A stretch of 64,000 nt of DNA from IMG/VR virus record IMGVR_UViG_3300025364_000003, positions 124,001 to 188,000 of that record; one strand, 5' to 3'. The translations under genes were made by a program, and so were the position numbers. Below are positions 5,012-62,520 of this stretch, piece after piece (position 1 is the first letter of the stretch; each line of letters opens with the position of its first letter). The notes under the pieces are model-generated. The model saw only the letters and a program-made list of their open reading frames with translations, did not search any database and had not been told where the DNA came from.

Positions 5012-5022
5012 CAGAGGTAAAT

Positions 5023-17276: not shown

Positions 17277-17491
17277 CAAAAATTAGCAAACGTCGTTTGA
17301 TGGAATTAGCGGGGTTGGACATTGCCCCTTCGCCAACGAGTGTCAATGCATTTCATGCTCCGGGTCACATGGCAAAAGTAAACCAAGCACAAGAAATAAG
17401 AGATGTGCTTGGCCAAGATGAAGAAGATACTGTGCCCTCTGATGATATTGAAGAAGTAGAAAGTGAACTACTTGCTGTCGATTTTGACTAA
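17273..17491 (+). CDS. small acidic protein with ISKRRLMELAGL leader
   Basis: Likely start ATG 17273 (ATGA overlap). Confidence 0.6.
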   Translation: MTKISKRRLMELAGLDIAPSPTSVNAFHAPGHMAKVNQAQEIRDVLGQDEEDTVPSDDIEEVESELLAVDFD

Positions 17492-24272: not shown

Positions 24273-25610
24273 ATGGCCAAGAAAACATTCGTACTTGACA
24301 CAAACATTCTTTTAGCCGACCCAAACGCAATTTTTTCTTTTGAAGAAAACGAAGTTATTTTACCTTTTGTTGTTCTGGAGGAACTTGATAAGCATAAGTC
24401 CAACCAAGGAGAGATTGGCCTCAGCGCACGTGAAGTAAGTCGTCAATTGCATGACTTATTAAAGGTTGCCGATAGACAAACTATGAAACGTGGCATTTCG
24501 CTACCTAATGGTGGCAAGTTGAAAGTTGTTTCTTCCTCAGGACAATCCGATCTTTTTGACAAAGAGCTTGCAGCAGATAAAGCAGACAATCATATTCTAG
24601 CGGTTTGTCTTGGACTGAAAAACAAAAAAGTTATTTTAGTCACGAACGACATGCTTCTTAGGGTAAAGGCAGATGCCTATGGCATTGCCAATGAAAATTA
24701 TAGAAAAAATGTCATAGCCAAAAACATTGAAAGCATGTATTCAGGCATCAGAGAACTGAATGTCACGAAATCTGTATTGCATGAACTTTGGCAAAAATAT
24801 AGAGACAAGGACAGTTTAACGAATTTTATCAATGATAAAATTGATAACTTAAAACCAAATGAATTTGTTCATATAACAAACGGTGGATCAAATAAGCCAT
24901 TTTTAATTCGAAAGCAAAACGATTCAATCAGGTTCGTACCCGAAGGCTTTGAATTGTCGAAAGTGAAACCTCGCAATCTAGAACAGAGACTTGCTTTTGA
25001 TCTTCTTATGGACAATTCTGTCAACCTTGTTTCTATCGTAGGAAGCGCAGGAACAGGCAAGACATTAATTACTCTTGCGGCAGGACTCGAACAAGTTGTA
25101 GACAAAAAGAAATACAAATCATTGCTTGTGTGTCGGCCAGTTCAACCTCTTGGAAAAGACATTGGTTATCTTCCAGGAAGCAAAGAAGAAAAGATGGAGC
25201 CATGGATTGCCCCCATAAAAGACAATCTTCGTTTTCTTCTTACAAGTGATGGAAGAAAGTCTAGGAATAGCGAGAACAGTCTAAATTACTACTTCGATAT
25301 GGGAATCATCGAGGTTGAGGCAATGACCTACATTCGAGGTCGCTCTATTGCCAATGCATATATGATCATTGATGAAGCACAGAATTTGTCAGCTCATGAA
25401 TTGAAAACAATCATTACACGAGTGGGCGAAGGTACCAAGATTGTACTAACTGGCGACATTGAACAGATTGACAACATGTACGTTGATTCTGTTTCAAACG
25501 GACTTGCTGTTGCCGTTGAGAGGTTCAAGGAACATGACATAGCTGGTCATATTACCTTGAAGAAGGGCGAACGAAGCAAGTTGGCAACTTTAGGTTCAAA
25601 AATATTGTGA
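24273..25610 (+). CDS. phoH: PIN-PhoH (PhoH2-like) ATPase
   Basis: FVLDTNILL PIN domain; GSAGTGKT, IGYLPG, RGRS, IIDEAQN, TRVGEG.K...GD..QID motifs. Confidence 0.95.
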   Translation: MAKKTFVLDTNILLADPNAIFSFEENEVILPFVVLEELDKHKSNQGEIGLSAREVSRQLHDLLKVADRQTMKRGISLPNGGKLKVVSSSGQSDLFDKELAADKADNHILAVCLGLKNKKVILVTNDMLLRVKADAYGIANENYRKNVIAKNIESMYSGIRELNVTKSVLHELWQKYRDKDSLTNFINDKIDNLKPNEFVHITNGGSNKPFLIRKQNDSIRFVPEGFELSKVKPRNLEQRLAFDLLMDNSVNLVSIVGSAGTGKTLITLAAGLEQVVDKKKYKSLLVCRPVQPLGKDIGYLPGSKEEKMEPWIAPIKDNLRFLLTSDGRKSRNSENSLNYYFDMGIIEVEAMTYIRGRSIANAYMIIDEAQNLSAHELKTIITRVGEGTKIVLTGDIEQIDNMYVDSVSNGLAVAVERFKEHDIAGHITLKKGERSKLATLGSKIL

Positions 25611-29900: not shown

Positions 29901-31347
29901 TGGCAACCTTACTGTAGATGGTACAGCACCTGGTGGTGGCGGAAGTTCTTTCTTCTATTCAGATACGGCTAACGTTATTGAACAATCAGGCTCGCTTGAA
30001 ATGTCAGGCTCTGGGCTTTTCAAGTCTGGCCTAACTGGTGCCTTAAACGTGCTTCCAGACGGTTCACCGTTTATTGTTGGGGGTGGAGATGTTTCGGTAT
30101 CTTCGGCTTCCAATGGAAGAATTACAGTAAGTGCAAATCTGTCAACATCAAGCAGCCTAATCCAGCTTTCTGTTGTCGATTACACAACTACGACTGCCAC
30201 ATCAAGCAATCCAGCAGCTCTTGGACAAATCATTTTTGACCCAAGTGATTATACGGGTAACATTATTCTAAAATCAGTTCTTTCAGCAGCTTCTTCATCA
30301 GTCACTGCTTCTGTCAGACTTTTCAATGTAACCTCTGGTGCTCTTGTTCACATTGGAGGAGCAGGTCAGACCGAAATTACCTCGGTTGGCACAACTCCAA
30401 CAATCGTTGAATCAGTCAACTTGCGTAATGCAACCAACTTCTCTGCCGGGGCGGCCATTTACGAATTCCAAGCATTCACCTCGGATGAGTCTCAGCTTGT
30501 TACAGTTGGTGGTGGCGAAATCAGGACCAATGGTTTGGTTGATAAGAGCATTCCTATTACTGGTAGCTTGTTGTCATTTGGTATTGCCGACTATGCTACT
30601 ACCAATAGCACTTCCTCCAACCCAGAGGCCGTAGGACAGCTTGTATTTGATCCATCGGAATACACCGGCCCAATTAAACTTAGAGCGGTTCTAGCGTCAA
30701 CCACAGGCTCTGTGACAGCTTCTATGCGACTGTTTAACGTAACTTCGGGCTCGTTGGTTCATATTGGTGGTTCAGGCGTTACAGTGTTGGAAACAACAAG
30801 CGTGACACCGGAGTTAGTTGAATCTGTTAATTTGCGTGACGCCACAAACTTTTCAACAAACCAGGCCATTTATGAACTTCAGCTTTACACAACAACTGGT
30901 TCGCAATCTGCCATTGTTGGTAGTGCTGAGTTTAGAGTGACCGGCTCAGTTACTGCGCCTCCAACAAGACTTAGCCTTGGAAGCTATACTACTACAACAG
31001 CAACTTCATCAAATCCACAAGCTGTTGGTGGTGGTTACTTCGTACCTTCAGAGCATAATACCAACTTGTGTGTTTTCCGAGCTGTTCTTTCTACTACAAC
31101 AGCTTCAAATACCGCATTTGCACAGCTTTATAATATAACATCAGGGGCGTTGGTTCATGTGGGCGGACCAGGAATAACAGAACTTTCTTCGTCGGCCAAT
31201 TCGCCAACCAATGTTGAATCCGTGAACCTGTTTAACGCAACAAACTTTAACCCAGACACAAGCTCTGTATATGAGGTTCGTGTTTATGGAAGTGGCTCGT
31301 CGTCGCCAACAACGACGCTAGTAAATTCAGAACTGGTGTGTTCTTAA
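26956..31347 (+). CDS. large modular fibre/spike protein (1463 aa)
   Basis: Four copies of ~130-aa DY.TT..SSNP...VESVNL domain, four D...FVSG...FGGDV.ISG modules, central FIGAG..N beta-helix repeats. Confidence 0.8.
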   Translation: MAKDFRASQVQTTQIISSGSSGTNARIVVYPVEKQSGASPNQGIIDPDKFSTGSIGVDTFIFVSGGIGERNTINNSIAVFGGDVHISGNLTSDQQIFGEGESLFRLGVVDYATTENTSSNPLVAGQVAFPGNEFSGSSLTLRAILANTTGSGIAAVKLFNLDSLTFVDINGPSQQELAVTGTTPTLVESVNLLSASGFTTGSLALYELQLFSNSSTNTAQVGGGELRPSGSFTANTIITSSVTVISGNWIDDNSRLRTTASVAIDSDGNFANEKGSDNYFYVSGTINSWTTASLFGNRSISVFGGDVRISGSVIGGSGSVIQDNFPGGTTGSNSPFNFIGGGVNHTITPFSNGQETSTAGTTARNFIGAGTANTITQSSDSAIVGGKRNQISEGVLSGAFIGAGSSNSVNGNDATQVAGFDNSVGGDRAFGGAGDSNVSSADDGFVGAGANNVVALGANRSAIVGGSTNNIQNGDTDSFIGAGTFNTIDAKNSAIVAGTNNIVDFDANHSFIGAGQNNRIDTLGATLWEAILVGSGNRIQGFSANATNYSVILGGQSNLIVNSASLLYGFDLTSSFSEGNTIQFGSRISGKRPYRFVVSASKGSVFHGGLSGSLTTLTDGSPYLIAGTNITLSTGSSGAVTINSTGGGGGADSDWTLTGSTLYTTSSIVVGQQTTTNPIGEDVFFFVSGTFGSGSAVDAVSVFGGDVRISGTLAVGTGSVFIKDDSIFFGSASIRNVGGQLQFFDDNNLAGQTLQQLATGSGGGETSSLQQAYNLNNVVTTSVASGSFTLFANDDTHSPFVISASAHSTGDPPIIDIRTGTGSPEFFRVIDTANKEFMTIEKAGNFDSRINMRSEGSFGISYGWLNNTNAGIGLNTDNIRFQVSSGDSFEFVSTEGVVAFTISAGGSIAASSIVAGVSVAVSSTLGVTDTIRARGGLAVDPGANISETTYGTDAIMVVSGVVGGKDSTANSTALFLGDVHISGNLTVDGTAPGGGGSSFFYSDTANVIEQSGSLEMSGSGLFKSGLTGALNVLPDGSPFIVGGGDVSVSSASNGRITVSANLSTSSSLIQLSVVDYTTTTATSSNPAALGQIIFDPSDYTGNIILKSVLSAASSSVTASVRLFNVTSGALVHIGGAGQTEITSVGTTPTIVESVNLRNATNFSAGAAIYEFQAFTSDESQLVTVGGGEIRTNGLVDKSIPITGSLLSFGIADYATTNSTSSNPEAVGQLVFDPSEYTGPIKLRAVLASTTGSVTASMRLFNVTSGSLVHIGGSGVTVLETTSVTPELVESVNLRDATNFSTNQAIYELQLYTTTGSQSAIVGSAEFRVTGSVTAPPTRLSLGSYTTTTATSSNPQAVGGGYFVPSEHNTNLCVFRAVLSTTTASNTAFAQLYNITSGALVHVGGPGITELSSSANSPTNVESVNLFNATNFNPDTSSVYEVRVYGSGSSSPTTTLVNSELVCS

Positions 31348-32627
31348 TGGCTGGTAATAAAATCATAGTTCCTGACATTTTTGTATCTTCAAGAACTGAA
31401 GACACAAATTCAAATGCTTATAGCACCTTTCAAGGCGCCTTTAAAGCATGTTGGGATCACCTAAAATACCTCGAAACTTTAGGAATAACTACGGAAATTG
31501 CACGAAATCATGGGACTGCTGTAAATGGTCGTGGACCAGGAACCGGCTGGTGGGACGAACCAACACGTTTTGGTAACAACGGGTGGTCATGTTTTAGATG
31601 GAATTCAAACACTAATAGAAGCTGGGAATGGTACATGTTTATTCAAAATTGCGATACCGTTGGTCCGACTGGCCCTGGATTACCTGGCTATAGTATTCCT
31701 GGAGCTGGTAGTACTCGTGGATTTCATGTAGCAGCCGCTATTACAATTTCTGGTTCTGTTACATCTAACCCTTGGGGTGGAACCACTGGTTCTCTTGGTT
31801 CTGATGCCAAAGGCAGCCCAGTTTGGATATCTGGTTCAAATAATCACAAGCTTTTTGTTTTTCCTGAAGCCAATGGCGTTAGTGGTGTTTTGGGAGATGG
31901 AAGAACCAGCACCGATCGTGAAGGACTCGCTGTGGATAGCGACGCAGGTGGAAATGCCTCACATCGTAGAATAAGCTTTATTACAGATGATGATTCGTTT
32001 TTATATATCAGAAACAACGGTCAGGCTGATTATTCGATTGGATATTTGGGACTCTACGAGGCTTTTAATCGACAAAATGCTGAAGGAGTTGAGGATACTA
32101 CAACGCCAAACTTTGTTTGTTATTGGGATTTCTCTCCGTCAGACCCATGGGAAGCGTCTAAAGACATTGGAAGTTTGACAGTTGAACCAGGCGACAATGA
32201 ACAAGGGGCTTGTATTTTGCCGCACGAGCAAGATAGCCAAATGAGAGGAATACGACTTTTGACTATACCAGATAGTACAGTTGATGGTGTTCATGTTTTG
32301 AAATACGGACAAAGGCTGACCAAGCCAACGGTTGCATTGCACGATGCAACATTTTCTCTGCGGTCCGCTGGGGTTTTTGAGGCTTCGACACTATATCAAG
32401 GAACAGTCGGTAGGTTTGATCCGACTATGTTACAGGTTTCGAAAGGAATACCAAATTTTGCTCGTATTACAAATACAAGCATACCCAAAATGGCAATAAA
32501 CCCACTTCAAAATAGTTCAAATCTTGCAACATCTTGGATAATTCCATGGCATCCAGATGCTCCATATCTGGAGAGGCGTGATCGATTTGGTGATAGAAGA
32601 AGATACGTTATAACGAGTAGCGGTTAA
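31347..32627 (+). CDS. virion protein, paralogue 1 of 3 (RSWEWY family)
   Basis: Start likely ATG 31347 (TAATG overlap); FRWN..NRSWEWY, NPWGGTTGSLGSD.KG.PVW. Confidence 0.75.
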   Translation: MAGNKIIVPDIFVSSRTEDTNSNAYSTFQGAFKACWDHLKYLETLGITTEIARNHGTAVNGRGPGTGWWDEPTRFGNNGWSCFRWNSNTNRSWEWYMFIQNCDTVGPTGPGLPGYSIPGAGSTRGFHVAAAITISGSVTSNPWGGTTGSLGSDAKGSPVWISGSNNHKLFVFPEANGVSGVLGDGRTSTDREGLAVDSDAGGNASHRRISFITDDDSFLYIRNNGQADYSIGYLGLYEAFNRQNAEGVEDTTTPNFVCYWDFSPSDPWEASKDIGSLTVEPGDNEQGACILPHEQDSQMRGIRLLTIPDSTVDGVHVLKYGQRLTKPTVALHDATFSLRSAGVFEASTLYQGTVGRFDPTMLQVSKGIPNFARITNTSIPKMAINPLQNSSNLATSWIIPWHPDAPYLERRDRFGDRRRYVITSSG

Positions 32628-32628
32628 A

Positions 32629-33867
32629 ATGGCAGGAACAATTAGAGCAAAACTTGACGGATATTTCTTTGGCGAATCCGACGACAACAATGCTAAAGCT
32701 GCGTTTAAGTTTGTTTGGGACCATCTAAAGGAGCTTGAAACACTAGGCATTGTGACCGAAGTCGCTAGAAACAATGGAACTAGCGCAGGCGTAGGCGATA
32801 CTGGCTGGTGGAACGATAGCAATTCATTTGGCAACGATTGCTGGGCCGTATTTCGATGGAACGCAAGTTCCAATCGTTCATGGGAATGGTACTTCTATAT
32901 GCAAGCTGCTGTTAGCTATACAGCGGGAGTGGGTGCACCAGCGTTAGTTCAAGGTGGTACAAGCATTGATGGTTTAGTGATGGCTGCGGCAATTTCTGCC
33001 AATACCGCATCGGGTGTCACGTCTAACCCCTGGGGCGGAACCACTGGTTCTCTTGGTTCTGATACCAAAGGTGATCCCGTCTGGACTACAGGTTCTGTTG
33101 GCGATGGTCTTTTTGTTTTTCCTCGTTCGAATAATTTAAGTGGTTCGCACAATACAAGCAAGCAAAATTTATGGCTAGCTTCTTCTGAAGCTAGCCATAT
33201 GCGGGCTCATGTTATTACTGACGAAGATAGTTTTCTTGGCATTTTTGGCAACCCGGACGCAGAATCTGACTACTCTTCATATTCTATGAGCTTTATCGGA
33301 CCATACAAGCCAAACCAAATTATATCTTCAAGCGTAACCACGCCATTAACTGTTGTACAGGCAACAGAAGATACGCTTGGCATGTTTAATCCAGGCGTAG
33401 AACATGGCGGCACAGCGGGATCTGCTGTTAATTGTGGCGGAGGTATAATTGCAGCAGATAAAATTTCAGTACGAAGTCTTAGAGTTGATTTTCCAAGACC
33501 TAATATAGGCAGTGCATTTTTACCCACTGATCAGTGGGGTTCAGAGATACAAGGACACGTTTCTGGTTCCGATGATGCGAAATGGATTCCTTTAGACCCA
33601 TTTTTATTTGTTCATAATAATGAACCTGATTATCAGGGTTACGTTGGTCAACTTAACAATCAACTAATTAAACTGGTTCGGTATGCACACCTAACACATC
33701 GCTCATCAGATGGAACTAAAATAACCTTTTCTACAAACAGAAACTGGTTTGTTGATTCCATTGGAACTGTTGCAGATAATGTTGTTCTTGTTCCTTGGAC
33801 TGGCTCTGTTGATGTAGGAAAAAATCTTGGGATTCGTGATGGTGTATTTAGTGGGAGCATTGGCTAA
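32629..33867 (+). CDS. virion protein, paralogue 2 of 3
   Basis: Same motifs as 31347. Confidence 0.75.
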   Translation: MAGTIRAKLDGYFFGESDDNNAKAAFKFVWDHLKELETLGIVTEVARNNGTSAGVGDTGWWNDSNSFGNDCWAVFRWNASSNRSWEWYFYMQAAVSYTAGVGAPALVQGGTSIDGLVMAAAISANTASGVTSNPWGGTTGSLGSDTKGDPVWTTGSVGDGLFVFPRSNNLSGSHNTSKQNLWLASSEASHMRAHVITDEDSFLGIFGNPDAESDYSSYSMSFIGPYKPNQIISSSVTTPLTVVQATEDTLGMFNPGVEHGGTAGSAVNCGGGIIAADKISVRSLRVDFPRPNIGSAFLPTDQWGSEIQGHVSGSDDAKWIPLDPFLFVHNNEPDYQGYVGQLNNQLIKLVRYAHLTHRSSDGTKITFSTNRNWFVDSIGTVADNVVLVPWTGSVDVGKNLGIRDGVFSGSIG

Positions 33868-34123: not shown

Positions 34124-35386
34124 ATGGCCGGAACAATCAAAGGAAGGTTGCTTGTATCTTTGTCTAGTAGCGGAGCTGGCGCTGATCAGAAAAACATCGC
34201 CTTATTTTACCGCTCTGTTTATGATTTTCTTAAGGTTCAAGTTGAAACAGAAGGCTATGTTACAGAAATAGCCAATGGCGGAAGCAGCGGAAGTAATATT
34301 AGCCCAGGAGCCTTTTCTGTTTGGCGTTGGAATACCAGTTCTAACAGAAATTGGGAATGGTACATGCTTATTCAGTTTACTTCTGGAAGCACTGTACCTT
34401 CAAGTCGTTTGCCAGTTAATATTGAAGGTTTCGGTAGCACATTTAACAACATGGGTTTTGGCGCCGCTGTTGGCATAAATCACATATCTGGTAGTTATAC
34501 ATTCTTTAATCCATGGAATGGAACTACTGGTTCTTTTGGCTCTGACAGTAAAGGCAACCCTGTTTGGGGTACGACCGCTTCAAATCCTTTGGCAGACGTA
34601 CATCTTTCTGTTATGCCGAGGAGCAATATTAGTGGTAGTAGGATTATCAGTAACGCAGGAGCAACTACCTTTTGGGACGAACGTTCTGATTTAGCTGGAT
34701 TTGCGAGTGGCTTTACGGGTCAGTACAACAATGGACTGATGTTAAACATGTTTGCTGACGAAGACAGCATCATGGTTTTGGTAAAAGATGATGATTCAAA
34801 CGATCACGGTCATATATACATTGGCCCATATGATCCGCTACCAAGTTTGTCTGCTTCAGTTCCCGCCCCACTGATGATGTATAGGAAACTTTGGGCAGAG
34901 TCTAGTGACTTATTTGACAACAGTGACACTATTTGGAGCAATATAAGAGCTGGAACAGCATGTACTGTTTTCCCAATGAGCAACACTCTATCAAGCTCAG
35001 AGCTTTTCCTCCCAACTTGTGGGATAATGCCCACCTTTGCCCCCTTGTTTGGAACTATTCAGCCGAACAAGCAAGCTCAAATTGCTTTGAATACCACTTC
35101 AAGCTTTTATGAGTCAACACCAATTTTTATTCATAGACTCGAACGTCCATTTGGAATGGTTGGTATGTTTAGAAGTCAATTGTTGCGCCTTATTTCTGGG
35201 GTGGGAGGGGATACTTTTCGGTATGCCACTAGTAATAGTGGTTCCAGTGCGCTAAGAAGAGCATTTTTTCCCGTTGATAACATAAGTGAGGAAGCTGGCA
35301 CATATTCGACACCTTGGTCGGGCTCATTGTTGCCCAACACTGGGTCAGGTGTTTTTACAACCATTTCTGGCGGATTCATATTTTAG
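34124..35386 (+). CDS. virion protein, paralogue 3 of 3
   Basis: WRWNTSSNRNWEWY, NPWNGTTGSFGSDSKGNPVW, DEDS motif. Confidence 0.75.
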   Translation: MAGTIKGRLLVSLSSSGAGADQKNIALFYRSVYDFLKVQVETEGYVTEIANGGSSGSNISPGAFSVWRWNTSSNRNWEWYMLIQFTSGSTVPSSRLPVNIEGFGSTFNNMGFGAAVGINHISGSYTFFNPWNGTTGSFGSDSKGNPVWGTTASNPLADVHLSVMPRSNISGSRIISNAGATTFWDERSDLAGFASGFTGQYNNGLMLNMFADEDSIMVLVKDDDSNDHGHIYIGPYDPLPSLSASVPAPLMMYRKLWAESSDLFDNSDTIWSNIRAGTACTVFPMSNTLSSSELFLPTCGIMPTFAPLFGTIQPNKQAQIALNTTSSFYESTPIFIHRLERPFGMVGMFRSQLLRLISGVGGDTFRYATSNSGSSALRRAFFPVDNISEEAGTYSTPWSGSLLPNTGSGVFTTISGGFIF

Positions 35387-35387
35387 T

Positions 35388-36047
35388 TTATAAATTGAAA
35401 ATAATGAACGGTTCTGGCCTGGGTCCTAGCACCATCATTCTTACATGTTCTATGTCTTCTTCAGTAATTGAACCTCTTCGTCCATTGTTGTGAGGATACA
35501 TCACTGACTGAATTTCTCTATCATGATGCAGTCCAAGTGCATGACCAAATTCATGTATAGCGGTACTTAAAACCCTGTCGTCGGGTATTCCAACGTGTAG
35601 TTGAATTTTGCTTCTTGCAATTGACATTTTTATTCCAAAAAAATCATGTCGAAAATAACGATGAGCCAAACCAAAAAGTTGGTAACCACATTCATTTTGC
35701 GGTAGCGGTTCTTCATTTATCCAAATTGTATTTTCTTCCATTGTTTCCATTGGAACACTTTCTTCATACGAAAATATATTTAATTCGGTTTCTCGATTCC
35801 AGGTTGCAATGGCCTGTTGCACAACTCTTTTTCGTTTTTCTCTCATAGAATAATCAACAATGACTCGTATTGGGAAAGCTTCTTGATTCCATAAAACTGG
35901 TTGTCCGAAGTCGTTTTCAATGACATTGGCAAAATCAGCAGATGGCACATTATGATTTTCATTGCAGTGCGAAGGTGTCGTTTCGGCATGTGTCGGAACG
36001 CAACCAGATGCTAAAGCAATAAATAAAAATGCAAAGTTTTTCAACAT
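35388..36047 (-). CDS. matrixin (M10-like) zinc metalloprotease, probable lipoprotein
   Basis: HEFGHALGLHH + SVMYP Met-turn; start MLKNFAFLFIALASGC with lipobox-like ASGC. Confidence 0.85.
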   Translation of the reverse strand: MLKNFAFLFIALASGCVPTHAETTPSHCNENHNVPSADFANVIENDFGQPVLWNQEAFPIRVIVDYSMREKRKRVVQQAIATWNRETELNIFSYEESVPMETMEENTIWINEEPLPQNECGYQLFGLAHRYFRHDFFGIKMSIARSKIQLHVGIPDDRVLSTAIHEFGHALGLHHDREIQSVMYPHNNGRRGSITEEDIEHVRMMVLGPRPEPFIIFNL

Positions 36048-36073
36048 GTTCTTAAATATATAAAACCTACTTA

Positions 36074-38617
36074 ATGAAAGCAATGTCTTCCAAGAACAAA
36101 AATAATAATTGGGAAAAGCAATTCCGTGAACTTGAAAAAAGGGCGGTTAGACATGAACAAATTTTACAAGAGGCTGGTTATGCTGGAGGCCCGAGTTCCG
36201 TTGATGGGTCTGCAACTTTCAGGGGAGGCCCATACGGTTTTGGAGGCGTAAATCAACTGGCTGCTGGTTTGTCTGAGCCGGTAAAGAAGTTGAAAAAACA
36301 AAGAGATGAGGAAGCGGTTTATAACATTGCAAGCCAACAAAGAATAAATCGTGGGTACCCGGCACCACAATCCGTCACAGGATTTCCCGGTGGTGAATCT
36401 AATTCCGGCATTCGCTCTGGACAGCATTTCCCCACAGAAATTGAACCAATAGCAGTTTCTTCCGACGACCTTTCAAAAATGGCTGCTGACGAAGATCCAA
36501 CAGATGACTATTTTGGCTTTGATGATGATGAATTAGAAGACATGAAAGATAGGTCAGACAGAGGGCTGAAAGAATTTGGAGTATCAGGTGCTCAAGGAGC
36601 TATGAGAGGTGTTCCTTCAGACAAGAATTATCGTGACCTTCCTGGGTGGCCACGTCACAATTCGCTTGAGAAACCCGGCAACTTCGTTCCAGAAATTGAA
36701 GGAGACGAAGATGGGGATGGCGAAGAAGATGACTACTTGACCGATGAGGAATACGTCAATGACGTGCTGCGTTTGAATGGCATGGGGGTTAAACCCGGTC
36801 ATCTCAAAAAATTGTTTGGTCAGGGTGGGCTTGAGGAATCAGCTCTCTATGAGCGCACGCTTTATCATGGAACTGTGATTGATCACAAGGACAGCATAGA
36901 GCAGTATGGCCTCACGGGTGAACTTGGAGACTGGGTAAAAGATGCTTACGGTTTGGAACTGGATGAAGAAGACTGGGAAGAACAACTTGGTGGTATAACT
37001 TTCGCTGCTCAAAAGAGCGACATGAGCATGGCTGTTGGAGCGATGCGTTTTCACATTGGCAAGAAGCTGGGAAAGTCACTGAGGGATGTAACAATTGAAG
37101 ATATTCGTCGCTGGGGTATGTTGGTTGTCATAAAAGATGTCGAAGAAGAAGACGATTCATATGGCGACGGGTGGAAACAGCGTCCACCACATGGGCAAGA
37201 AGGCTATTATGATGAATATCCTGTTTCTGTAGAGCCTGGTGATTGGTTTACTAAAGAACAAGTGTACATCGATCATGTTCTTACAGGTGGTAAACTAATT
37301 GACTTCCTTCGTCGACATGGAGCACTCAGACATGTTACTTCGCAAGTAAAAGAAGACAAAGAAGCAGCTGCACGAAGAGAGTTGATCAAACTTGCAGTTG
37401 CTTATCATGATCCCAAGTATCGGGATGATATTGTAAATAAAGTAAAGCAGCTGTCTGGGAAAATGCTGCAAAAGCAACTTGAAAACTACAGAGATATTGA
37501 AGAAGCACATGAAACCATTGCTCAAAAGAGAGCGCAAAGATACGGCGGGACTGCGCAAAAGCAGCGAGGACAACAGCTAAAATTTGATTTTGGGGAAGCG
37601 CTAAGTTTGAAAAATGTATTTCTAGAAACGTATGTTGCTCCCCCCTATGGTCCAGAACCCGACAAAGGAACAGAGCATTACAAGCGTGGGAATTGGGAAG
37701 AAACTCCAATAGGAGATGATTGGCTTATTAATCCAGTCGATCATTCTGGTGGTCATGCTGAAATGCCAGCAGCAAAACATAGTCCTGGCAGACAAGCTTA
37801 TGGACAAATAGGTTCTCCTAAAGACTTTGTACCTGAAGACTGGGAGCAGAGACATTCCAAAACAAAAGAGGAACCAATGGATCCAGAAGAACTGAAAAAA
37901 TTTATCGAATCTGTTGTTAAGGAAGCAATCAGAGAAGAAAGAGTGAACGAAGAAGACTTGGTTGAAGGTTCGAAAAATGAACCAACCAATCCAGAACTTT
38001 GGTCTAGGGCAAAAGTAGCAGCAAAGCGTAAGTATGATGTATATCCGAGCGCTTATGCTAACGCTTACGCTAGTAAATGGTATAAAGACAAAGGTGGTGG
38101 CTGGCGCAAAAAGAAAAAACCCAAGAAAGAATCTCTTGAGAATATCATTCGAAATCTCGTTAAAGAAGAAATGGGCGTTCAAGAAAAAGTTCACAAAGAT
38201 AGCGGTCTTGGAAAATGGTTTGGAGAAAAGTGGGTTGATATCTCCAGAAAGAAAAAAAGCGGTGGACATCCTGAATGTGGCGCCTCGGCTGACAAGGGTA
38301 AAAGAAAAAGTGATAGTTCAAAAGCATACCCAAAGTGCGTGAAGAAGTCAAAGGCGCAATCCATGACCAAAAAGGAAAAAGAAAGTGCTACTCGCCGTAA
38401 AAGAGCAAAGCCTAACAAACCTGGAAAGCCTGACAACACAGCCACAGACAAGACAAAAAAAGAAGCATACACTGGCATTGACGACAAAACAGGTCGTGGA
38501 GAACCAAAAGGTGGCAGTAAGGCTTTTCAAAAAAGTCGTAAAAAAGTTTTTGACTACGATGAAGAACACAAACCCAAGGGAATTGAGGATTTGAAAAATT
38601 ATCACATGGATGATTAA
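36074..38617 (+). CDS. large modular internal-head-type polyprotein with ART-like domain
   Basis: RTLYHGT...I.QYGL...GGITFA domain; YDVYPSAYAN and GL.KWF.EKWVDI...YPKC modules; internal leader copies ELKKFIESVVKEAIRE and LENIIRNLVKEE. Confidence 0.65.
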   Translation: MKAMSSKNKNNNWEKQFRELEKRAVRHEQILQEAGYAGGPSSVDGSATFRGGPYGFGGVNQLAAGLSEPVKKLKKQRDEEAVYNIASQQRINRGYPAPQSVTGFPGGESNSGIRSGQHFPTEIEPIAVSSDDLSKMAADEDPTDDYFGFDDDELEDMKDRSDRGLKEFGVSGAQGAMRGVPSDKNYRDLPGWPRHNSLEKPGNFVPEIEGDEDGDGEEDDYLTDEEYVNDVLRLNGMGVKPGHLKKLFGQGGLEESALYERTLYHGTVIDHKDSIEQYGLTGELGDWVKDAYGLELDEEDWEEQLGGITFAAQKSDMSMAVGAMRFHIGKKLGKSLRDVTIEDIRRWGMLVVIKDVEEEDDSYGDGWKQRPPHGQEGYYDEYPVSVEPGDWFTKEQVYIDHVLTGGKLIDFLRRHGALRHVTSQVKEDKEAAARRELIKLAVAYHDPKYRDDIVNKVKQLSGKMLQKQLENYRDIEEAHETIAQKRAQRYGGTAQKQRGQQLKFDFGEALSLKNVFLETYVAPPYGPEPDKGTEHYKRGNWEETPIGDDWLINPVDHSGGHAEMPAAKHSPGRQAYGQIGSPKDFVPEDWEQRHSKTKEEPMDPEELKKFIESVVKEAIREERVNEEDLVEGSKNEPTNPELWSRAKVAAKRKYDVYPSAYANAYASKWYKDKGGGWRKKKKPKKESLENIIRNLVKEEMGVQEKVHKDSGLGKWFGEKWVDISRKKKSGGHPECGASADKGKRKSDSSKAYPKCVKKSKAQSMTKKEKESATRRKRAKPNKPGKPDNTATDKTKKEAYTGIDDKTGRGEPKGGSKAFQKSRKKVFDYDEEHKPKGIEDLKNYHMDD

Positions 38618-38663: not shown

Positions 38664-38705
38664 ACAGCTGTCACAAGAGTGACAACATTTTTAGGAGGAA
38701 ACATT

Positions 38706-39134
38706 ATGGGACTTTTAGCAAGAAAAAACCTTAATTCTGTTAACCCAATTTTTAATGATAGCTTTTTTGATGATTTCTTTAGAGATCCTTGGGGTGTTTC
38801 CCTTGCTCGCCCCAACTATTCAAACGTTGCTCGATACCCAATTAGGCGTCTAAGAACTGACAATGGAACGTTTAAAGTAGAATTTGATGTTCCAGGCGCC
38901 GGAAAAGATGACATCGAAATTCATTATGATGAAGAAACTGGTATTCTCACCGTCTCCTCTAAGACAGAGGAAAATTCCAAAGAGTTGGAAACGAGTCGCA
39001 CATTTAGCTACCAAGTTTCGGCCTATGATCTAGATACCGAAACCATAGAAGCTACCTGCGACAAAGGAATATTGACTATAATAGGCAAGCCTATAACAAA
39101 GCAGCTGACCCGAAAGCGAATTGAGATCAAGTAA
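38706..39134 (+). CDS. Hsp20/alpha-crystallin small heat-shock protein
   Basis: FDDFF N-terminus, DVPG..K.DI.I, F, I.A...GIL.I, terminal IEI; AGGAGG before ATG 38706. Confidence 0.9.
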   Translation: MGLLARKNLNSVNPIFNDSFFDDFFRDPWGVSLARPNYSNVARYPIRRLRTDNGTFKVEFDVPGAGKDDIEIHYDEETGILTVSSKTEENSKELETSRTFSYQVSAYDLDTETIEATCDKGILTIIGKPITKQLTRKRIEIK

Positions 39135-46982: not shown

Positions 46983-47444
46983 ATGAAAATTTCCAAGAAA
47001 CAAATAAGAACCTTGGTTCGTGAAGCAGTACGAGTGCAGCTTGATGAAATTTATGGCATTTCACAGTATGAACGTATGCTTGAGCTAAAACATCAATATG
47101 AAGACGACATTAAAGTTCTTGATAAGATTGGTCCCGAATTATATCAAAAGATCATTGATTTTAGAGAACAGGCAAGTGATTTCAATGAATTCAAAAGGCT
47201 TGTGAGGGGCATGCCCGTTCACATGGCAAAGAAGTTTTGGGATCGCCAAATGGGCAAAGTTTCAACAGAGCGACTTGTGGAACTGCGTGATGAATGGGAA
47301 GAACTTAAAGATCGTTTCAAAGAGATAGATGCAACAACAGAAGCTGACCGAGCTTATGGACGCAAGCGAACAAAAATTATTGATACAGAAACTGGTGAGG
47401 TCATTGGGACCGAAACGGACAAACGAGGCAGTCTGGGTTCCTGA
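46983..47444 (+). CDS. leader-bearing hypothetical protein
   Basis: MKISKKQIRTLVREAVRVQLDE; TACTTA 46941. Confidence 0.75.
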   Translation: MKISKKQIRTLVREAVRVQLDEIYGISQYERMLELKHQYEDDIKVLDKIGPELYQKIIDFREQASDFNEFKRLVRGMPVHMAKKFWDRQMGKVSTERLVELRDEWEELKDRFKEIDATTEADRAYGRKRTKIIDTETGEVIGTETDKRGSLGS

Positions 47445-51742: not shown

Positions 51743-52489
51743 GTGTTACTCAAAGAATATATAAACTATCAAGTTGCTAGTGTCTTGCTCGAAATCAGAG
51801 GCACGTTCAAGTGGAATGAATTTAAGGCACTTAGTACCCTAGACCAAAAACTTCAATACGCTCAACAACATCTCAAGGAGCTTGGAAGAGGTAGCAGCAG
51901 GGCTGCCTTCCTACTAAGCAATCGATATGTTTTAAAGATTGCCCTTCCTCAAGCGGCAGAAAAGGGAATGGGGCAGAACAAAGGCGAGCTTCAGGTCTTT
52001 GCTAATACGGCAAGCAAGAATTATGTAACCGCTATTCATGACGCTGGCGAAGATGGCCATTGGCTCGTTTCAGAAATTGCACGACCACTTGCAAGCACAG
52101 AAGAATTTCAGAAGCTCACAGGGGTTCCCTGGGAACAGTTTGTTTCTATACTGAAAAATCATGAAGATATCAAGAGTGAATTTAGCGAGATCGAACAGGG
52201 CATTCAAATGTGGTCTCGTCGTCTCAAAAATGCTCAATCGCAGGGTAATGAAGCGGGTATTGACAAGTTTACAAAGAACGTTCAAAACCTTCAGCAAAGA
52301 AAAACAAACCTTCAAAAAATGTTAAATTCACCAGTGGTACAAGGTGCTCTTGCTTTGATGAATCAAGCTGGTGTTATGCGTGGTGATATTCTTGAAGTGG
52401 ATCATTGGGGCAAAACCGCTGATGGTCGTGTAGTTCTATTAGACTACGGCTTTACAGAGGACTTGGTTGACCTTTACCGAGCTGCATGA
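51743..52489 (+). CDS. protein-kinase-fold enzyme, paralogue 1, with leader
   Basis: LGRGSSR Gly-loop, VLKIA Lys, QN..E helix C, D....HWG catalytic loop, LLDYG; leader LKEYINYQVASVLLE. Confidence 0.8.
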   Translation: MLLKEYINYQVASVLLEIRGTFKWNEFKALSTLDQKLQYAQQHLKELGRGSSRAAFLLSNRYVLKIALPQAAEKGMGQNKGELQVFANTASKNYVTAIHDAGEDGHWLVSEIARPLASTEEFQKLTGVPWEQFVSILKNHEDIKSEFSEIEQGIQMWSRRLKNAQSQGNEAGIDKFTKNVQNLQQRKTNLQKMLNSPVVQGALALMNQAGVMRGDILEVDHWGKTADGRVVLLDYGFTEDLVDLYRAA

Positions 52490-53283
52490 TGAGACTGAAA
52501 GAACAAATACGCTTCATGGTTTTTCAAACACTTCATGAAATTAGGAGTAATTTCAAGTGGTCTGAATTTAAAAAGATAGATGATCACTTTGACAGGGCCT
52601 TGTACCTTATAAACACTGGTACTCAAGTATTAGGGGAGGGAACTTCACGTCTTGTATTTTTGTTAAGCAATAGGTTTGTGCTCAAACTAGCCCAACTAGC
52701 CCAACCTCTTCCACGTTCTCCTCGTAGTTTTGAGAGAGGGAAGGCGCAAAACAAATATGAAGTAGATTTGTCTACCGATCCAGATGTAAAACCAATTGTG
52801 GCCGAAGTCTATGATGCGGCCGATGATTACTCGTGGATTGTTTCGGAGTTGGTTCGACCAATAAAAAATATAAATGAATTTAAAGATTTAACTGGGTTTT
52901 CGTTCACTGATTTTCGCCAGGTTCTTAAACTTGTTTTTGAGGGCGAACTTGAAAATACCATTGAGAAACATCGCAAATTGCGACAGAGGTATATCGAAGA
53001 GATCAATCGACTTGACTCTGAAGATACGGCCGATAAAACAAATATTGAATACTACAAAAGCCAACTTGAGGCTATTGAAAAAGTTATTGAATATCAAACT
53101 GAATTACCCGAACACCCAATGGTACAAGCTGCTATTGAATTAATTTCTGATAAGGGTGCAATGGCTGCCGATATGATCGTGTTAGACCACTGGGGCAAAA
53201 CTGCCGATGGCCGTGTAGTTTTGTTGGATTATGGTTATTCGAGAGATGTAGCTAGAAAACATTATGATGTTACGTGGATCTGA
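52486..53283 (+). CDS. protein-kinase-fold enzyme, paralogue 2, with leader
   Basis: LGEGTSR, VLKLA, QNKYE, DMIVLDHWG, LLDYG; leader LKEQIRFMVFQTLHE. Confidence 0.8.
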   Translation: MMRLKEQIRFMVFQTLHEIRSNFKWSEFKKIDDHFDRALYLINTGTQVLGEGTSRLVFLLSNRFVLKLAQLAQPLPRSPRSFERGKAQNKYEVDLSTDPDVKPIVAEVYDAADDYSWIVSELVRPIKNINEFKDLTGFSFTDFRQVLKLVFEGELENTIEKHRKLRQRYIEEINRLDSEDTADKTNIEYYKSQLEAIEKVIEYQTELPEHPMVQAAIELISDKGAMAADMIVLDHWGKTADGRVVLLDYGYSRDVARKHYDVTWI

Positions 53284-53307: not shown

Positions 53308-54017
53308 ATGTTAGTTGCAAATCTTAAAGAACAAATACATTTCATGGTGTCGCAAACTCTTTTAGAAATTAGGAGTAATTTCAAGTGGTCGGAGTTTAAA
53401 GAACTTGAAACTCCTAAGGGAATGGCATATTACCTAGAAAAAACAGGCACCGAAAAACTAGGCAGCGGGTCTTCTAGATGGGTTTACTTATTGAGCAACC
53501 GCTATGTCTTAAAATTAGCTGATCCTTTAAATCCTCGTAGGGGACTGGCCCAAAATCATGCAGAACTTGAAGTTGCAACCGACTCAGTGTAGCTCCATTC
53601 GTGTCGCAAATTTTTGATTATGATCCTGATGGTTTCTGGTTGGTATCTCAACTTGTTAGACCATTGAATAGCGATGAAGATTTTGAAAAACTAACTGGTG
53701 GAATCGACTGGGAAGCATTTCAGTATGCCGTACAAACTTTTTTGTATGAAGCTAGGGGGGATTTTAAAAAAGCTGCTGATGAACTTGAGTTTAGGGCATC
53801 AAGGAGAAATTCTGATCATTATGCAGAAGTATTACTCAAGGCTCTTTCATATCTTAAGACAAACAAGTGGGTGAGAAATTTTCTAAAAATGGCAAAAAAA
53901 TACGATTTGCTTCCAGAAGATTTAACATTTTTAGATCATTGGGGCAAAACCGCTGATGGACGTGTAGTGCTTCTTGACTATGGTTATACGGCATTAGTTC
54001 ATGATCTACACTACTGA
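53308..54017 (+). pseudogene. protein-kinase-fold enzyme, paralogue 3, split by a 1-nt frameshift near 53588
   Basis: 53308-53592 has leader, GSGSSR, VLKLA, QNHAE; 53601-54017 has WLVSQ, DLTFLDHWG, LLDYG; one added base gives a continuous ATDSxVAPFVSQ matching STDPDVKPIVAE. Confidence 0.75.
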
Positions 54018-55385: not shown

Positions 55386-58300
55386 ATGGTTAGCCAAATT
55401 TTTAACTTTCCAGGCTTCTTCGATAGAGAAATCGATCTAACAGCCCAGATTCAGGAGCCAGTAGGCGTTCCAGCTGGTGTAATTGGTGGTGCCGAACGTG
55501 GTCCGGCATTCGTCCCATTCACTGTTGGATCATTTGCTGATTTCCGAACTCGCTTCGGCGATCTAAATCCAAGATATGCTGCGCCATACGCAGTCGATAG
55601 ATTCCTGGAAAACAGGACAGCACTTACCTTCATCAGAATTCTTGGTGCGGGTGCCAATGAGACGTCAAGTGATATCGAGACAACTCGTTTGCAAGGAACA
55701 GTCAAAAATGCTGGATTCCGTCTAAGTGGAACTCTCAGTTCCGTTAACCCAGCTACTACTAATGGTGCTGTTCAATTCCTCGTCGCTCGCCACGTTGTTA
55801 CTGCTTCAGAAGCACTCGGAATGCCGATGTTTTCTGACAATAATTCACTTCTTACCTCGGGTTCGAACGACGAGGTTTACCTTACTCGTGGTGTTATTTT
55901 CGCTGCGTCAGGTACTCGAATTCAAATTCTAAATGGAGATGACAGCAACGAGCAGTACAGCAGCTTTGTTGATGACGTTGCAACTGTAAACTCTGCAAGC
56001 AGAGAATTCAAAATTGTTATTTCTTCATCGGCTGGTGCGTCGTTTGGCAATGACGACGGATTCCCTGGCGTTAGAATTCTAACCGCTTCTCTGAATCCAA
56101 GTTCTGATAACTACTTTGCCAAGCTGATGAATACTGATCCAGAAAGGTTCAGCGACGAAAAACATGTGGTCTATGCTGATTATGCAGTCGATGCCGAACT
56201 CGCAAATGTTGGCACTGGAAGCGGCGATGTTGCTATTGCAAGCGGTAGCATTAACACTTCTTCTACTTCTGGCAACACCTCTCTTCCATTCCTAGAGGCG
56301 TTCGGTCGTTTTGACACCAGATTCACAACTCCAAAAACACCTTGGTTTATCTCGCAACCATATGGCAAAACTGAGTATGACCTCTTTTACATTGAAGCTG
56401 TTGATGATGGCGCATACGCAAATCAGCGTTTCAAGATTTCTATCACCAATCTTCTCAAGTCTTCAAATGTTCGTGATAAACACGGAACTTTCACACTTGT
56501 TGTAAGAACATTTGATGATACAGATGCCGAACCACAGATTCTTGAGCAGTTCAACAACCTTTCTCTTGATCCGGATTCGGACAACTACATTGCTAAGGTT
56601 ATTGGAGATAAGCGTGCTCGCTTCAACTTTGACGCTGAAGCTGAAGAAGATCGTCGCCTTCTCACCACTGGCAAGTTTGAAAACAGAAGCCGATACATTC
56701 GAGTATTTGTTTCTGACCAGGTAGCACAAAAGAAGATTCCTGAAGATGCTGTTCCATTCGGCTTCCGAGGAACTGCTCCATTGAGCACCAACTCACTTCT
56801 TTCTGATACTGCTGGGTCGGCGGCCCTAGCAAGACTTGCTTTGTCGGGTGCAACTGATCCACGTCTTGCGTGGTCTATAGTACCTCCTCTTCCATACCGT
56901 TATAAGGTAACAAGAGGAAATGCAGCAACCAATCCGGGTTTCGAAGGTGCTCCAGGAGCAACCGAATTAACTGATGCACGTTATTTTTGGGGGGTCAAGA
57001 CTTCTAGAAACACCAACGCACTGAATCCAAACATTGTCAATCTTCCAAACCAGTTGGTCAACAGCTACACTAAGTTTGCAGGTATTGAAAAACTTGATGT
57101 ACTTGTTACAGGTTCAGCTAAAGATGATTTCAACAACAATAAGTTTACGCTTGCTCGTGTTGCGCTAGGAAATGCATCACTCAATGATGTTACATCATCA
57201 GCCGCAATCCACATGAAAGAAGCTGCTTATCTTCGTAACAGAACGCCAGATGGGTTCGAATACAAGATAACTGATGAAATTTCTGGTCTGGATAGAATTA
57301 CATTTGCCACCCTTTACCAAAAGGGCACGTCTGCTGCCGACTTCAACAAGTTCACCAACTTTGCAAAGTTTACCTCTATTCTATATGGTGGTTTCGATGG
57401 CGTCAACATTCTTGATAAGAATGCAGCTACATTTAATGACCGTTCCACTTCAACAGAAACTGCTGGAAGCGAGGTTGGAAATGCAGCATCTACTTTCACT
57501 TCACCTGGACTTAACGAGAACGTAAACGGATTTGGTACTTCAAACCAGACTGTTTTCGCTTATCGAAGAGCTTCAGAGATTATCACTGATGCAATCGCAT
57601 CTAACATCAATCTGCTTACTATTCCAGGTCAGCGTGATCCGTTGGTCACAGACTTTGCTGCTGATGAAGTTCGTGACTTTGGTCTTGCTTTCTATGCCAT
57701 GGATTTACCAGCATATGACTCTGATGGTAACAGAATTTGGGACAATCAAACTTCAAGATTTATCGACATCGAACAGACTGCAAATAACTTTGAGCAGCGT
57801 GCTCTTGACAATGAGTTTGCAGGTGCTTACTTCCCAGATTTCGTACTTGAGGATGATGTAAACAGGCGCAGAGTAACCGTTCCAGCTTCTGTTGGAGCAC
57901 TTGCAGCACTTGGATTCAATGACCGTGTTGCTTATCCTTGGTTCGCACCAGCAGGCTTCAACAGAGCAGCTCTTGATTTTGTACAGCTTACAAAGACAAG
58001 AATTAAGCAACCAGAACGTGAACGTCTTTTTGACATTCACATTAACCCAATCGTCAAATTCCCTGGCGAATCTGGTTTCGTAATCTTCGCACAAAACACG
58101 CTTGAACAAGCCGAGTCTGCGCTCGGCAGTATCAATGTTGTTCGAATGTTGAATGAACTCAAGCGCAGGATAATCGAGATTGGCAACCGAGCAATCTTCG
58201 AACAGATTACTCCGGAAATTTACACTGAACTTGATAGGAGATTCCGCAGCGTTCTTAACCTCATTTCGGCTCGTGCTGGTATTGAGAGATTTGATGTCAT

Positions 58301-61563: not shown

Positions 61564-61668
61564 ATGAAGGGTCTACTCCACCGTTTAATAAATCTTTTCA
61601 ACTCTGAGCACTGTTGCTGCTGTTGTGGCTGCTGTCAGTGCCGGAACTGCAAGGGCAGCTGTAAGTGA
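61564..61668 (+). CDS. 34-aa Cys-rich peptide (metallothionein-like), missing from ORF track
   Basis: MKGLLHRLINLFNSEHCCCCCGCCQCRNCKGSCK*; GAGAGG RBS; stop overlaps next GTG (GTGA). Confidence 0.65.
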   Translation: MKGLLHRLINLFNSEHCCCCCGCCQCRNCKGSCK

Positions 61669-62519: not shown

Positions 62520-62520
62520 A

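Follow-up and report, generated by a model that had tools for sequence, protein, structure and literature searches.

What is the role of a long phage protein in which disordered stretches alternate with small, unrelated modules? The question was raised by an open reading frame (ORF) coding for a protein of 847 amino acids (aa), here called P0001. It lies in a window of 64,000 nucleotides corresponding to positions 124,001 to 188,000 (G000:C1:124001-188000) of the 206.5-kb IMG/VR virus record IMGVR_UViG_3300025364_000003 (CheckV completeness 45%). A 100% identical copy of the gene was found on a 460,987-bp IMG/VR viral contig; hence, the source of P0001 is an uncultivated T4-like marine megaphage of ~460 kb. 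The sequence comparisons suggested that P0001 probably loads several small proteins into the capsid, and we give about an even chance to the fuller proposal of a multi-cargo carrier polyprotein that resides inside the head and is cut there by the prohead protease.

Composition of P0001

The gene required no alternative genetic code, and the parts of its product are listed in Table 1. The original prediction had described a string of disordered segments and mini-modules punctuated by L/I-x-E sites, and every motif quoted there was present where it had been placed: ILQE at residue 30, GLKE at 164, GLEE at 252, ALYE at 257, LYHGT at 263, GITFA at 307, VFLE at 515, AIRE at 618, DLVE at 628, YDVYPSAYAN at 654, ASKWYK at 666, GGGW at 674, SLE at 687, LVKEE at 695, VQE at 702, KWF at 714, EKWVDI at 718 and YPKC at 752.

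The protein was rich in Lys, Gly, Glu and Asp, with acidic stretches in which the net charge reached -13 and -12 per 40 residues; its C-terminal third was basic. The acidic blocks A and B were rich in glycine and aromatic residues and were split by a conserved L-K-E167 site. All the non-cargo blocks fell on the disordered side of the charge-hydropathy plot, and the ESM Atlas model of the full-length protein had a predicted local distance difference test score (pLDDT) of 0.49 and a predicted template modelling score (pTM) of 0.26; most of the chain is thus predicted to be disordered. A Pfam scan of the whole protein and five segments gave nothing usable, a PHROG search returned two families of unknown function as the sole matches, and blocks A and B matched neither Pfam nor PHROG.

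Constant backbone and exchangeable cargo in the P0001 family

A word search yielded 12 close relatives of 486-862 aa. Shorter, cargo-less versions of 350-420 aa (P0093-P0096, P0142, P0220 and P0222) came to light in a full hidden Markov model search covering 1.8 billion cluster representatives. Alignments of 13 and 20 family members were used. The family was small (~20 representatives; 5 loci in the IMG/VR scan, one of them from the same phage), and it was absent from the nearest relatives of the capsid protein in the phage collection.

Four conserved, disorder-like blocks were common to the family: aa 1-255, aa 519-600, a linker helix, and a C-block of 50 aa (A[YF]TGIDD...NYH) that was kept in nearly all members. 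The first of them contained invariant Gly, Tyr and Phe residues and an invariant D-x-D-G-D-G-E-E-D-x-Y-L stretch. Between these blocks, the inserted material varied at two fixed points. In 8 of 13 members, site 1 was occupied by an LYHGT module resembling ADP-ribosyltransferases (ART). P0010 had a short variant of LYHGT type there, P0013 an unrelated segment, and P0006 and P0011 a ~130-aa module with a G-H-S-R-G motif; the site was empty in P0003, P0012 and P0093-P0096. At site 2, P0001 and P0003 carried two basic DUF5872-type modules and five members a HicA RNase toxin domain (PF07927, E ~1e-10, above the cut-off); the remaining ones had no insertion at this point. The HicA domain lay at the insertion point equivalent to that of P0001 in P0006 (E 5.5e-10) and P0013 (E 5.7e-11), the precomputed list giving P0009, P0011 and P0012; it was absent from P0001 itself.

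The blocks of P0001 were concluded to be separate units because homologues gain, lose or swap them. The predicted string of separable modules was therefore borne out by the alignments, and a comparison of module order found that the homologues were not co-linear as a single fold. The part of the prediction that spoke of one released enzyme proved too narrow for the family, since the cargo of relatives may instead be a HicA domain or a hydrolase-like module, or may be missing altogether.

The G-H-S-R-G module (aa ~493-624 of P0006, also in P0011) was observed to have a motif like the nucleophile elbow of serine hydrolases. The module of P0006 had no PDB sequence or Pfam match, so that its reading as a hydrolase comes from the motif.

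Conserved glutamate sites and the prohead protease

The hydrophobic-x-Glu sites became meaningful only when homologues were compared, as it was their conservation, not their count, that exceeded chance. At E33, hydrophobic-x-Glu preceded [AGS]GY in 17 of the 17 members holding the block; at E167, [LIV]-x-E stood before Q, F or A in ~18 of 19; and the end of block B (E255) was hydrophobic-x-Glu in 13 of 13. An hFxE site corresponding to E518 preceded block 2 in nearly all members holding that segment, and the C-block (A[YF]TG) was preceded by hydrophobic-x-E in 11 of 16 members, by K-K-E in 3 and by neither in 2. Across these boundary sites the P1 Glu was invariant and P3 was hydrophobic, P2 being freely variable. 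Of the sites named in the prediction, ALYE, AIRE, DLVE and VQE of P0001 were not conserved in the family.

In cargo-less members, the terminal L-x-E of block B ran straight into LKxhFxE, which indicates that cargo 1 was inserted between two tandem sites. The sites also fell outside the confidently folded parts: the module tail at aa ~491-518 had a pLDDT of 30 or less in the model from a shallow alignment, and in the model from a deep alignment the first strand began at module residue 6 (aa 261), after the E255 site.

Proteases of the gp21 family cut after L/I-x-E (PMC9026906), and the genome encodes a prohead protease of this family, together with a T4-type portal and a gp23-type major capsid protein (Table 1). 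The predicted polyprotein is thereby matched by a protease of fitting family specificity, which may cleave it. The closest relative of the capsid protein belonged to an uncultured 484-kb phage (48% identity), followed by those of Flavobacterium phage immuto and a Microcystis phage. Its N-terminal region contained L-L-K-E followed by TNALSLGG, ~35 residues ahead of PIVRRV, at what we take to be the position of the maturation cleavage site of T4 gp23.

The portal domain was observed to begin only at approximately residue 458 of a 1075-aa ORF located ~8-11 kb upstream of the window. The resulting N-terminal extension of ~450 aa resembles the portal propeptides of phiKZ- and SPN3US-like giant phages.

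A leader helix shared across the genome

Many ORFs of this genome begin with an amphipathic helix of the pattern h-x-x-h-[VIL]-[KREQ]-E-x-h. Within the first 30 residues of 261 genes, the pattern occurred 12 times, compared with 0.6 +/- 0.75 in shuffles (maximum 4). It occurred internally only six times, and two of these occurrences were at residues 611 and 692 of P0001, in both cases immediately before a cargo unit. The two internal leader copies that had been predicted are therefore real, in that they match a motif otherwise found at the N-terminus of ~11 other genes of the genome.

Because the pattern was defined after the N-termini had been seen, the count was repeated on loci from other phages that had not been used to define it, where 5 N-terminal matches were found against 0.16 expected. 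Of the six internal matches in those loci, three were the family linker helix before the C-block and three belonged to one unrelated protein present in three loci. Similarly, the helix of leader copy 1 sits directly ahead of the C-block in cargo-less homologues. Leader copy 2 was common to P0001 and P0003.

The spacing of the leader (h at -6, -3 and -2, E at 0) equals that of residues 4, 7, 8 and 10 of the T4 IPIII capsid-targeting sequence, in which residues 4 and 7 act in targeting and 8 and 10 in processing, Asp at 10 blocking the latter (PMC9026906). Several leader-bearing ORFs sit in the interval that separates the tail sheath genes from the capsid gene, or follow closely on the protease gene, and in T4 the prohead-core genes occupy corresponding positions. 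The leader-bearing ORFs were regarded as a candidate set of capsid-targeted proteins. Neither they nor the ORFs neighbouring P0001 received functional PHROG labels.

Just downstream of the protease gene, the ORF at G000:C1:119116-120267 had a similar N-terminus by eye, the pattern itself not being matched. Another motif, R-[WL]-x-x-L-A-G-[LIV]-x-x-E, recurred at the N-terminus of at least six ORFs (Table 1).

The ART-fold module

Cargo 1 of P0001 consists of an ART-fold domain (aa ~258-420), a three-helix bundle (aa ~420-480) and a disordered tail. The family profile hit 530 cluster representatives, most of which matched only profile positions ~255-460, that is, the ART-like module. This module was mainly a stand-alone protein of ~200-240 aa, and it also occurred inside giant proteins such as P0104 (4678 aa), alongside a PBECR5 nuclease domain typical of polyvalent proteins. 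H265-G-T, E387, D390 and G405 were invariant in an alignment of 65 sequences. No Pfam or PHROG model matched the module above threshold; a few members weakly matched PARP and PTS_2-RNA.

The best PDB sequence match of the profile was the RNA 2'-phosphotransferase Tpt1 (E 1.1e-4, over the LYHGT strand-helix), and a profile search of PDB sequences with a shallow alignment gave chance kinase matches only. An earlier fold from 8 sequences was poor (pLDDT 54), and the 65-sequence alignment gave a confident AlphaFold2 model (pLDDT 91.8, pTM 0.80), in which residues 165-225 formed the three-helix bundle. In an exhaustive structure search, the best match was the NAD lobe of KptA/Tpt1 (Z 7.5, root-mean-square deviation 2.8 over 85 residues, 25% identity). 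At least 15 further ART-fold chains, including TreX, Arr, PltA, DarT1, PARP13, pertussis S1, MbcT and tankyrase, followed at Z 5-6.4 over residues 1-166, and all other non-helical matches there were ART folds. Foldseek, Atlas and BFVD gave DarT, PARP, Tpt1 and Arr as neighbours, all weak, and Foldseek found no PDB match at E of 1e-3 or below.

The earlier ART-like call thus holds at the level of the fold, and cargo 1 was accepted as a divergent ART fold near the DarT/Tpt1/PARP branch, which may be enzymatically active. It shares with the superfamily the H-G-T strand-helix start, an invariant Glu and the match to the KptA NAD lobe, but it has its own insertions and the C-terminal three-helix bundle. 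With respect to the H-Y-E and R-S-E triads, H265 and E387 were invariant in the 65 sequences; no counterpart of the Tyr or Arg of the classical triads was identified. A label as PF18760 (ART-PolyVal) was rejected, as hhalign against the ART-PolyVal region of P0092 aligned 10 columns, covering the TLYHGT stretch only.

One of the leader-bearing ORFs, of 561 aa (1934-3619, minus strand), was observed to continue after the leader with M-Y-H-G-T...I..L-G-M-I-P. It weakly matched the start of the ART-like profile (E 6e-4, within the genome), and its C-terminal half matched phrog_3170; possibly this is another ART-like protein tagged with the leader.

The small basic modules

Cargo 2a corresponded to the first half of DUF5872 (phrog_27331) and cargo 2b, with two Cys, to phrog_23735; the isoelectric points (pI) of the two modules were 9.7 and 10.1. 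Stretches 55-71% identical to cargo 2a were found in P0014, P0058, P0088 and P0092 and cargo 2b was also matched in P0014 and P0058, the modules being placed in other orders. Their order was reversed in P0058, they flanked a 400-aa centre in P0014, one stood at the C-terminus of P0088, and in P0092 basic modules preceded an Fe/Mn superoxide dismutase and an ART-PolyVal domain. In pelagiphage HTVC027P they were two adjacent genes of 66 and 88 aa (gp49 similar to cargo 2a and gp50 to cargo 2b). The basic modules delimited in the prediction are accordingly autonomous units.

PF19197 was not hit when P0001 and its segments were scanned with hmmscan, though the precomputed list of the database assigns it to P0001. 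In P0058 the same model scored 51.5 bits (cut-off 27.5), over a stretch 55% identical to aa 633-681 of P0001. A PDB sequence search with the C-terminal basic modules found nothing; the structural neighbours of cargo 2b in the Atlas were small DUF5872/DUF6321 proteins of Uroviricota. By analogy with the basic internal proteins of T4, the modules may bind DNA.

A calcium-loop-like motif, D-I-D-N-D-G-D-I-D, was observed after DPVG both in the leader-bearing ORF 62497-63078 and in gp125 of Synechococcus phage Sf-CH8 (L010:1081-1686). The C-terminus of Sf-CH8 gp125 is a PSAYAN module, which links the small modules across T4-like cyanophages.

Proposed mechanism and alternatives

The backbone of P0001, made up of the N-terminal segment, acidic blocks A and B, block 2, the linker helix and the C-block, accepts small autonomous domains at fixed points. 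As cargo, P0001 has the putative enzyme of divergent ART fold and both halves of a basic protein of the DUF5872 type. Hydrophobic-x-Glu sites bracket each unit, and the later units each have the amphipathic leader helix of the genome ahead of them. We proposed the following mechanism. The leaders, the backbone blocks or both would bring P0001 into the prohead core, where the gp21-family protease would cut after the conserved Glu residues at ~33, 167, 255, 518, 617-621, 698-704 and 797. Cuts at these positions would release the ART-like enzyme (~30 kDa) and two basic peptides of ~10 kDa (pI ~10), besides several backbone peptides of acidic or neutral character: the leader (4 kDa), acidic peptides derived from aa 34-255, a block 2 fragment (11 kDa) and a C-peptide (6 kDa). 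In the manner of T4 Alt and the internal proteins, the cargo would remain associated with the DNA and be ejected into the host on infection. More tentatively, and with a fair way to go to an even chance, the leader helix could be a portable capsid-targeting tag used genome-wide in this lineage, with P0001-type carriers as tag-cargo concatemers unzipped by the prohead protease in the head.

Several points weigh against the carrier polyprotein. Its capsid location and cleavage are inferred from sequence comparisons, and no sequence homology of P0001 to the T4 internal proteins, Alt, gp22, gp67 or gp68 was detected with Pfam or PHROG. The number of [LI]-x-E sites in P0001 itself was that expected by chance (9 against 7.6 +/- 2.5 in shuffles, p=0.35), and that of [LIVFM]-x-E was 22 against 15.9 (p=0.054); the raw site count, being at chance level, was dropped as evidence. 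The site of P0001 before the C-block is K-K-E, its P3 not being hydrophobic. The leader pattern was written after the N-termini had been seen, a circularity that the count on independent loci lessens and does not remove. The ART matches were middling (Z 7.5, Foldseek E > 0.2, template modelling score < 0.5), and therefore speak for membership of the ART fold and not of a named family. The homologue P0005 has a different, non-structural-looking neighbourhood (ClpP and RNase T upstream, a macro domain gene and other non-structural genes), and the T4 late-promoter motif TATAAATA was not enriched (4 against 2.1 expected) and did not occur upstream of the P0001 gene.

The modules could also be read as one uncleaved polyvalent protein, an 847-residue multi-domain effector that is packaged and injected or made early, with the disordered blocks serving as linkers or interaction motifs and the conserved Glu residues in binding or helix capping. 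Polyvalent proteins that combine 2-15 unrelated domains occur commonly among phages, and N4 vRNAP, ArdC and TraC1 travel unprocessed (PMC5512222). P0001-type modules do occur in such contexts, ART-like with PBECR5 in P0104 and DUF5872 with ART-PolyVal and superoxide dismutase in P0092. We nevertheless consider this rather unlikely, as it leaves unexplained the hydrophobic-x-Glu sites with variable P2 around each insertion point, the two tandem sites kept in empty carriers and the N-terminal-type leaders repeated internally just ahead of cargo, in a genome that has a protease family with exactly that Glu-site specificity. It is quite unlikely, in our estimate, that P0001 is a cytoplasmic, non-virion protein, with the leader as a generic amphipathic helix for oligomerisation, membrane or partner binding and the carrier as a hub tethering accessory enzymes. 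The missing functional annotation of the leader-bearing ORFs, the neighbours of P0005 and the lack of a late-promoter signal would suit such a protein, but the leader-bearing ORFs occupy the positions of T4 prohead-core genes in the sheath-capsid interval and downstream of the protease gene, the leader spacing matches the T4 capsid-targeting sequence, and P0001 and P0006 lie in structural regions.

A further alternative differs from the carrier polyprotein in the purpose of the backbone, not in its processing: the backbone itself would be a prohead core or scaffold component, analogous to T4 gp22, gp67 or gp68, that is degraded to peptides, and the cargo would be opportunistic passengers. All the blocks and sites persist in the cargo-less versions of 350-420 aa, and with their pI of 4.5 the acidic blocks are similar in charge to the acidic core peptides of T4 (PMC9026906). 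The rarity of the family and its absence from the nearest relatives of the capsid protein are unexpected for an essential scaffold, which makes this explanation very unlikely to us. Processing by the divergent matrixin-like M10 metallopeptidase next door has next to no probability, despite its position directly upstream both here and in the P0006 locus (P0006 being 37% identical): P0005 lacks such a neighbour, and a lipoprotein-type signal means that the enzyme is probably exported, for which reason its involvement was rejected. Specificity for Glu at P1 is not known as a matrixin trait either.

Comparison with known systems

The proposed carrier polyprotein has its nearest parallel in the T4 internal proteins IPI-III and Alt, with which it has in common a gp21-family protease, amphipathic leaders ending in hydrophobic-x-Glu with the 4/7/8/10 spacing, and small basic cargo. 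T4 Alt is a packaged ART trimmed by gp21 at both ends (PMC9026906), and the ART-fold cargo of P0001 is likewise bounded by sites on both sides. Unlike the T4 proteins, P0001 fuses several leader-cargo units and a backbone in one 847-aa chain with internal leaders; it is known from sequence.

With polyvalent proteins (PMC5512222), P0001 shares the combination of unrelated effector-type domains in one phage polypeptide, their rapid shuffling and a predicted delivery by the virion, and in other proteins its modules are found together with PBECR5, ART-PolyVal and, as weak matches, Kinase-PolyVal/Zeta. In contrast to them, P0001 has no metallopeptidase, MuF or portal-fusion domain; none of the described domains of the polyvalent repertoire (MPTase, MuF, ART-PolyVal, PBECR) was found in P0001 itself with Pfam. 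Its chain is mostly conserved disordered backbone, and instead of autoproteolysis the processing proposed is cleavage at conserved sites by the prohead protease. The polyvalent-protein paper (PMC5512222) makes no mention of HicA.

In phiKZ, 201phi2-1 and SPN3US, gp21-related proteases cut internal head proteins after Glu at many sites, and the head proteins of giant phages include long propeptides with redundant sites (PMC9026906, PMC5694885). The source of P0001 resembles these phages in its large size, gp21-type protease, proposed multiply cut head protein and extended portal N-terminus. However, it belongs to a different lineage with a gp23-type capsid protein, P0001 has no homology to inner-body proteins, and P3 is S/A/G in phiKZ but L/I/V/F in the P0001 family.

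Capsid-targeting leaders, Glu-specific prohead proteases, packaged ARTs and polyvalent proteins are thus already known. What appears new is the concatenation of leader-cargo cassettes, with their internal leaders and bracketing sites, on a disordered backbone that is itself conserved, the occurrence of HicA and of an uncurated ART-fold family as exchangeable cargo, and the genome-wide leader set.

Genomic neighbourhood

The P0001 gene is surrounded by late and structural genes, namely two tail sheath genes and a gp15-like gene whose match was weak and below the cut-off. The window also holds PIN-PhoH, Hsp20 and patatin-like genes in addition to the two tail sheath paralogues (Table 1). In the syntenic locus of P0006 (L007), a gp13 gene lies near P0006 in a structural region, and a divergent M10 peptidase gene is found upstream as well. 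P0001 has no paralogue in the 206-kb record.

Table 1. Position of P0001, its parts and other genes discussed in the text. Positions refer to the window; those prefixed G000:C1 refer to the whole virus record.
Feature	Position	Strand	Remarks
P0001, whole ORF, 847 aa	36074-38617	+	open throughout, no stop
N-terminal segment, aa 1-33	36074-36172	+	ends I-L-Q-E33 before AGY; candidate propeptide
Acidic carrier blocks A (aa 34-167) and B (aa 168-255)	36173-36838	+	pI 4.5
Cargo 1, aa 256-518	36839-37627	+	ends V-F-L-E518
Conserved carrier block 2, aa 519-600	37628-37873	+	PEPD..ERYKQG..SGGH..PKDFVPEDWEQR; invariant columns K537 to T597
Internal leader copy 1, aa 601-621	37874-37936	+	core I-E-S-V-V-K-E-A-I at aa 611
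Cargo 2a, aa 634-680	37973-38113	+	small basic module PSAYAN..WYK..GGGW; phrog_27331 E 1e-10
Internal leader copy 2, aa 686-704	38129-38185	+	core I-R-N-L-V-K-E-E-M at aa 692
Cargo 2b, aa 708-796	38195-38461	+	basic two-Cys module GLGKWF..WVDI..CG..YPKC, pI ~10; phrog_23735 E 1.6e-9
Conserved C-block, aa 798-847	38465-38614	+	AYTGIDD..GGS.AF..YDE..KNYH, K-K-E797 before it
gp21-family prohead protease (Peptidase_S77), 206 aa	G000:C1:117183-117803		PF03420 E 5.8e-23, 78 bits (cut-off 27), match at 117261-117686
T4-type portal, 1075-aa ORF	G000:C1:112972-116199		PF07230 E 1.8e-67
gp23-type major capsid protein	G000:C1:191067-192989		PF07068 E 4e-65
Matrixin-like metallopeptidase (Peptidase_M10)	35388-36083	-	PF00413 E 4.6e-9; divergent from P0001 gene
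Hsp20	38679-39134		directly downstream of P0001 gene
Patatin-like phospholipase	13272-14138		
DUF3008 domain and DnaJ-type zinc-finger-like region	16206-17276		
PIN-PhoH fusion	24273-25610		
Leader-bearing ORFs	1934-3619, 4712-5029	-	
Leader-bearing ORFs	6898-7560, 7575-7895, 7929-8252, 46983-47444, 61665-62519, 62497-63078, 63655 onward		
Leader-bearing ORF outside the window	G000:C1:196326-196931	-	
ORFs with the second N-terminal motif	17252-17491; G000:C1:194848-195219, 198231-199076, 202103-202561, 202506-203024, 204230-205099		

The N-terminus of the M10 peptidase was observed to be of the lipoprotein type, with a hydrophobic stretch followed by L-A-S-G-C. Its listed TTG start overlaps the P0001 gene by 10 nt, and an internal Met is the likelier start.

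Other repeated genes were also observed. The adjacent ORFs 55386-58445 and 58502-61531 (~1010 aa) have similar N-termini, with a match to the tail sheath C-terminal domain in the second ORF, and probably arose by duplication of a sheath gene. Three tandem ORFs of ~410-430 aa (31338-32627, 32629-33867 and 34124-35386) have in common the N-terminal region DHLK/DFLK..ETLGI/ETEGY..TE[IV]A, two of them starting with MAGTI and one giving a very weak gp23-like match (E 0.009). In another tandem trio (51743-52489, 52486-53283 and 53308-53592), the N-terminus LKEQI.FMV.QTL.EIRSNFKWSEFK is common to the second and third ORFs and is loosely matched by the first (LKEYI..VASVLLEIRGTFKWNEFK). A GIY-YIG-like start (GIYKI.N..NGR.Y.GS) was found in three ORFs, at 1086-1931 of the window and at G000:C1:112164-112985 and 193174-194067, which are probably homing endonucleases; two of the three adjoin head genes.

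Significance

Proteins injected with the DNA of large phages decide the first minutes of infection, in host take-over and counter-defence, and they are almost impossible to identify for uncultivated phages. If the proposed processing is correct, a sequence rule combining a leader helix, a conserved Glu site and a gp21-type protease would predict capsid cargo, and if the leader is a genome-wide tag, the full injected set, including ART-like enzymes, HicA RNases, hydrolases and small basic proteins, would be readable from sequence. The analysis also brings out an uncurated ART-fold family, to which the 530 representatives hit by the profile are mostly linked through the ART-like module. Cargo would be stackable as cassettes on a disordered carrier, a HicA-type RNase is suggested as deliverable cargo, and the leaders would offer natural tags for loading foreign proteins into T4-like capsids.

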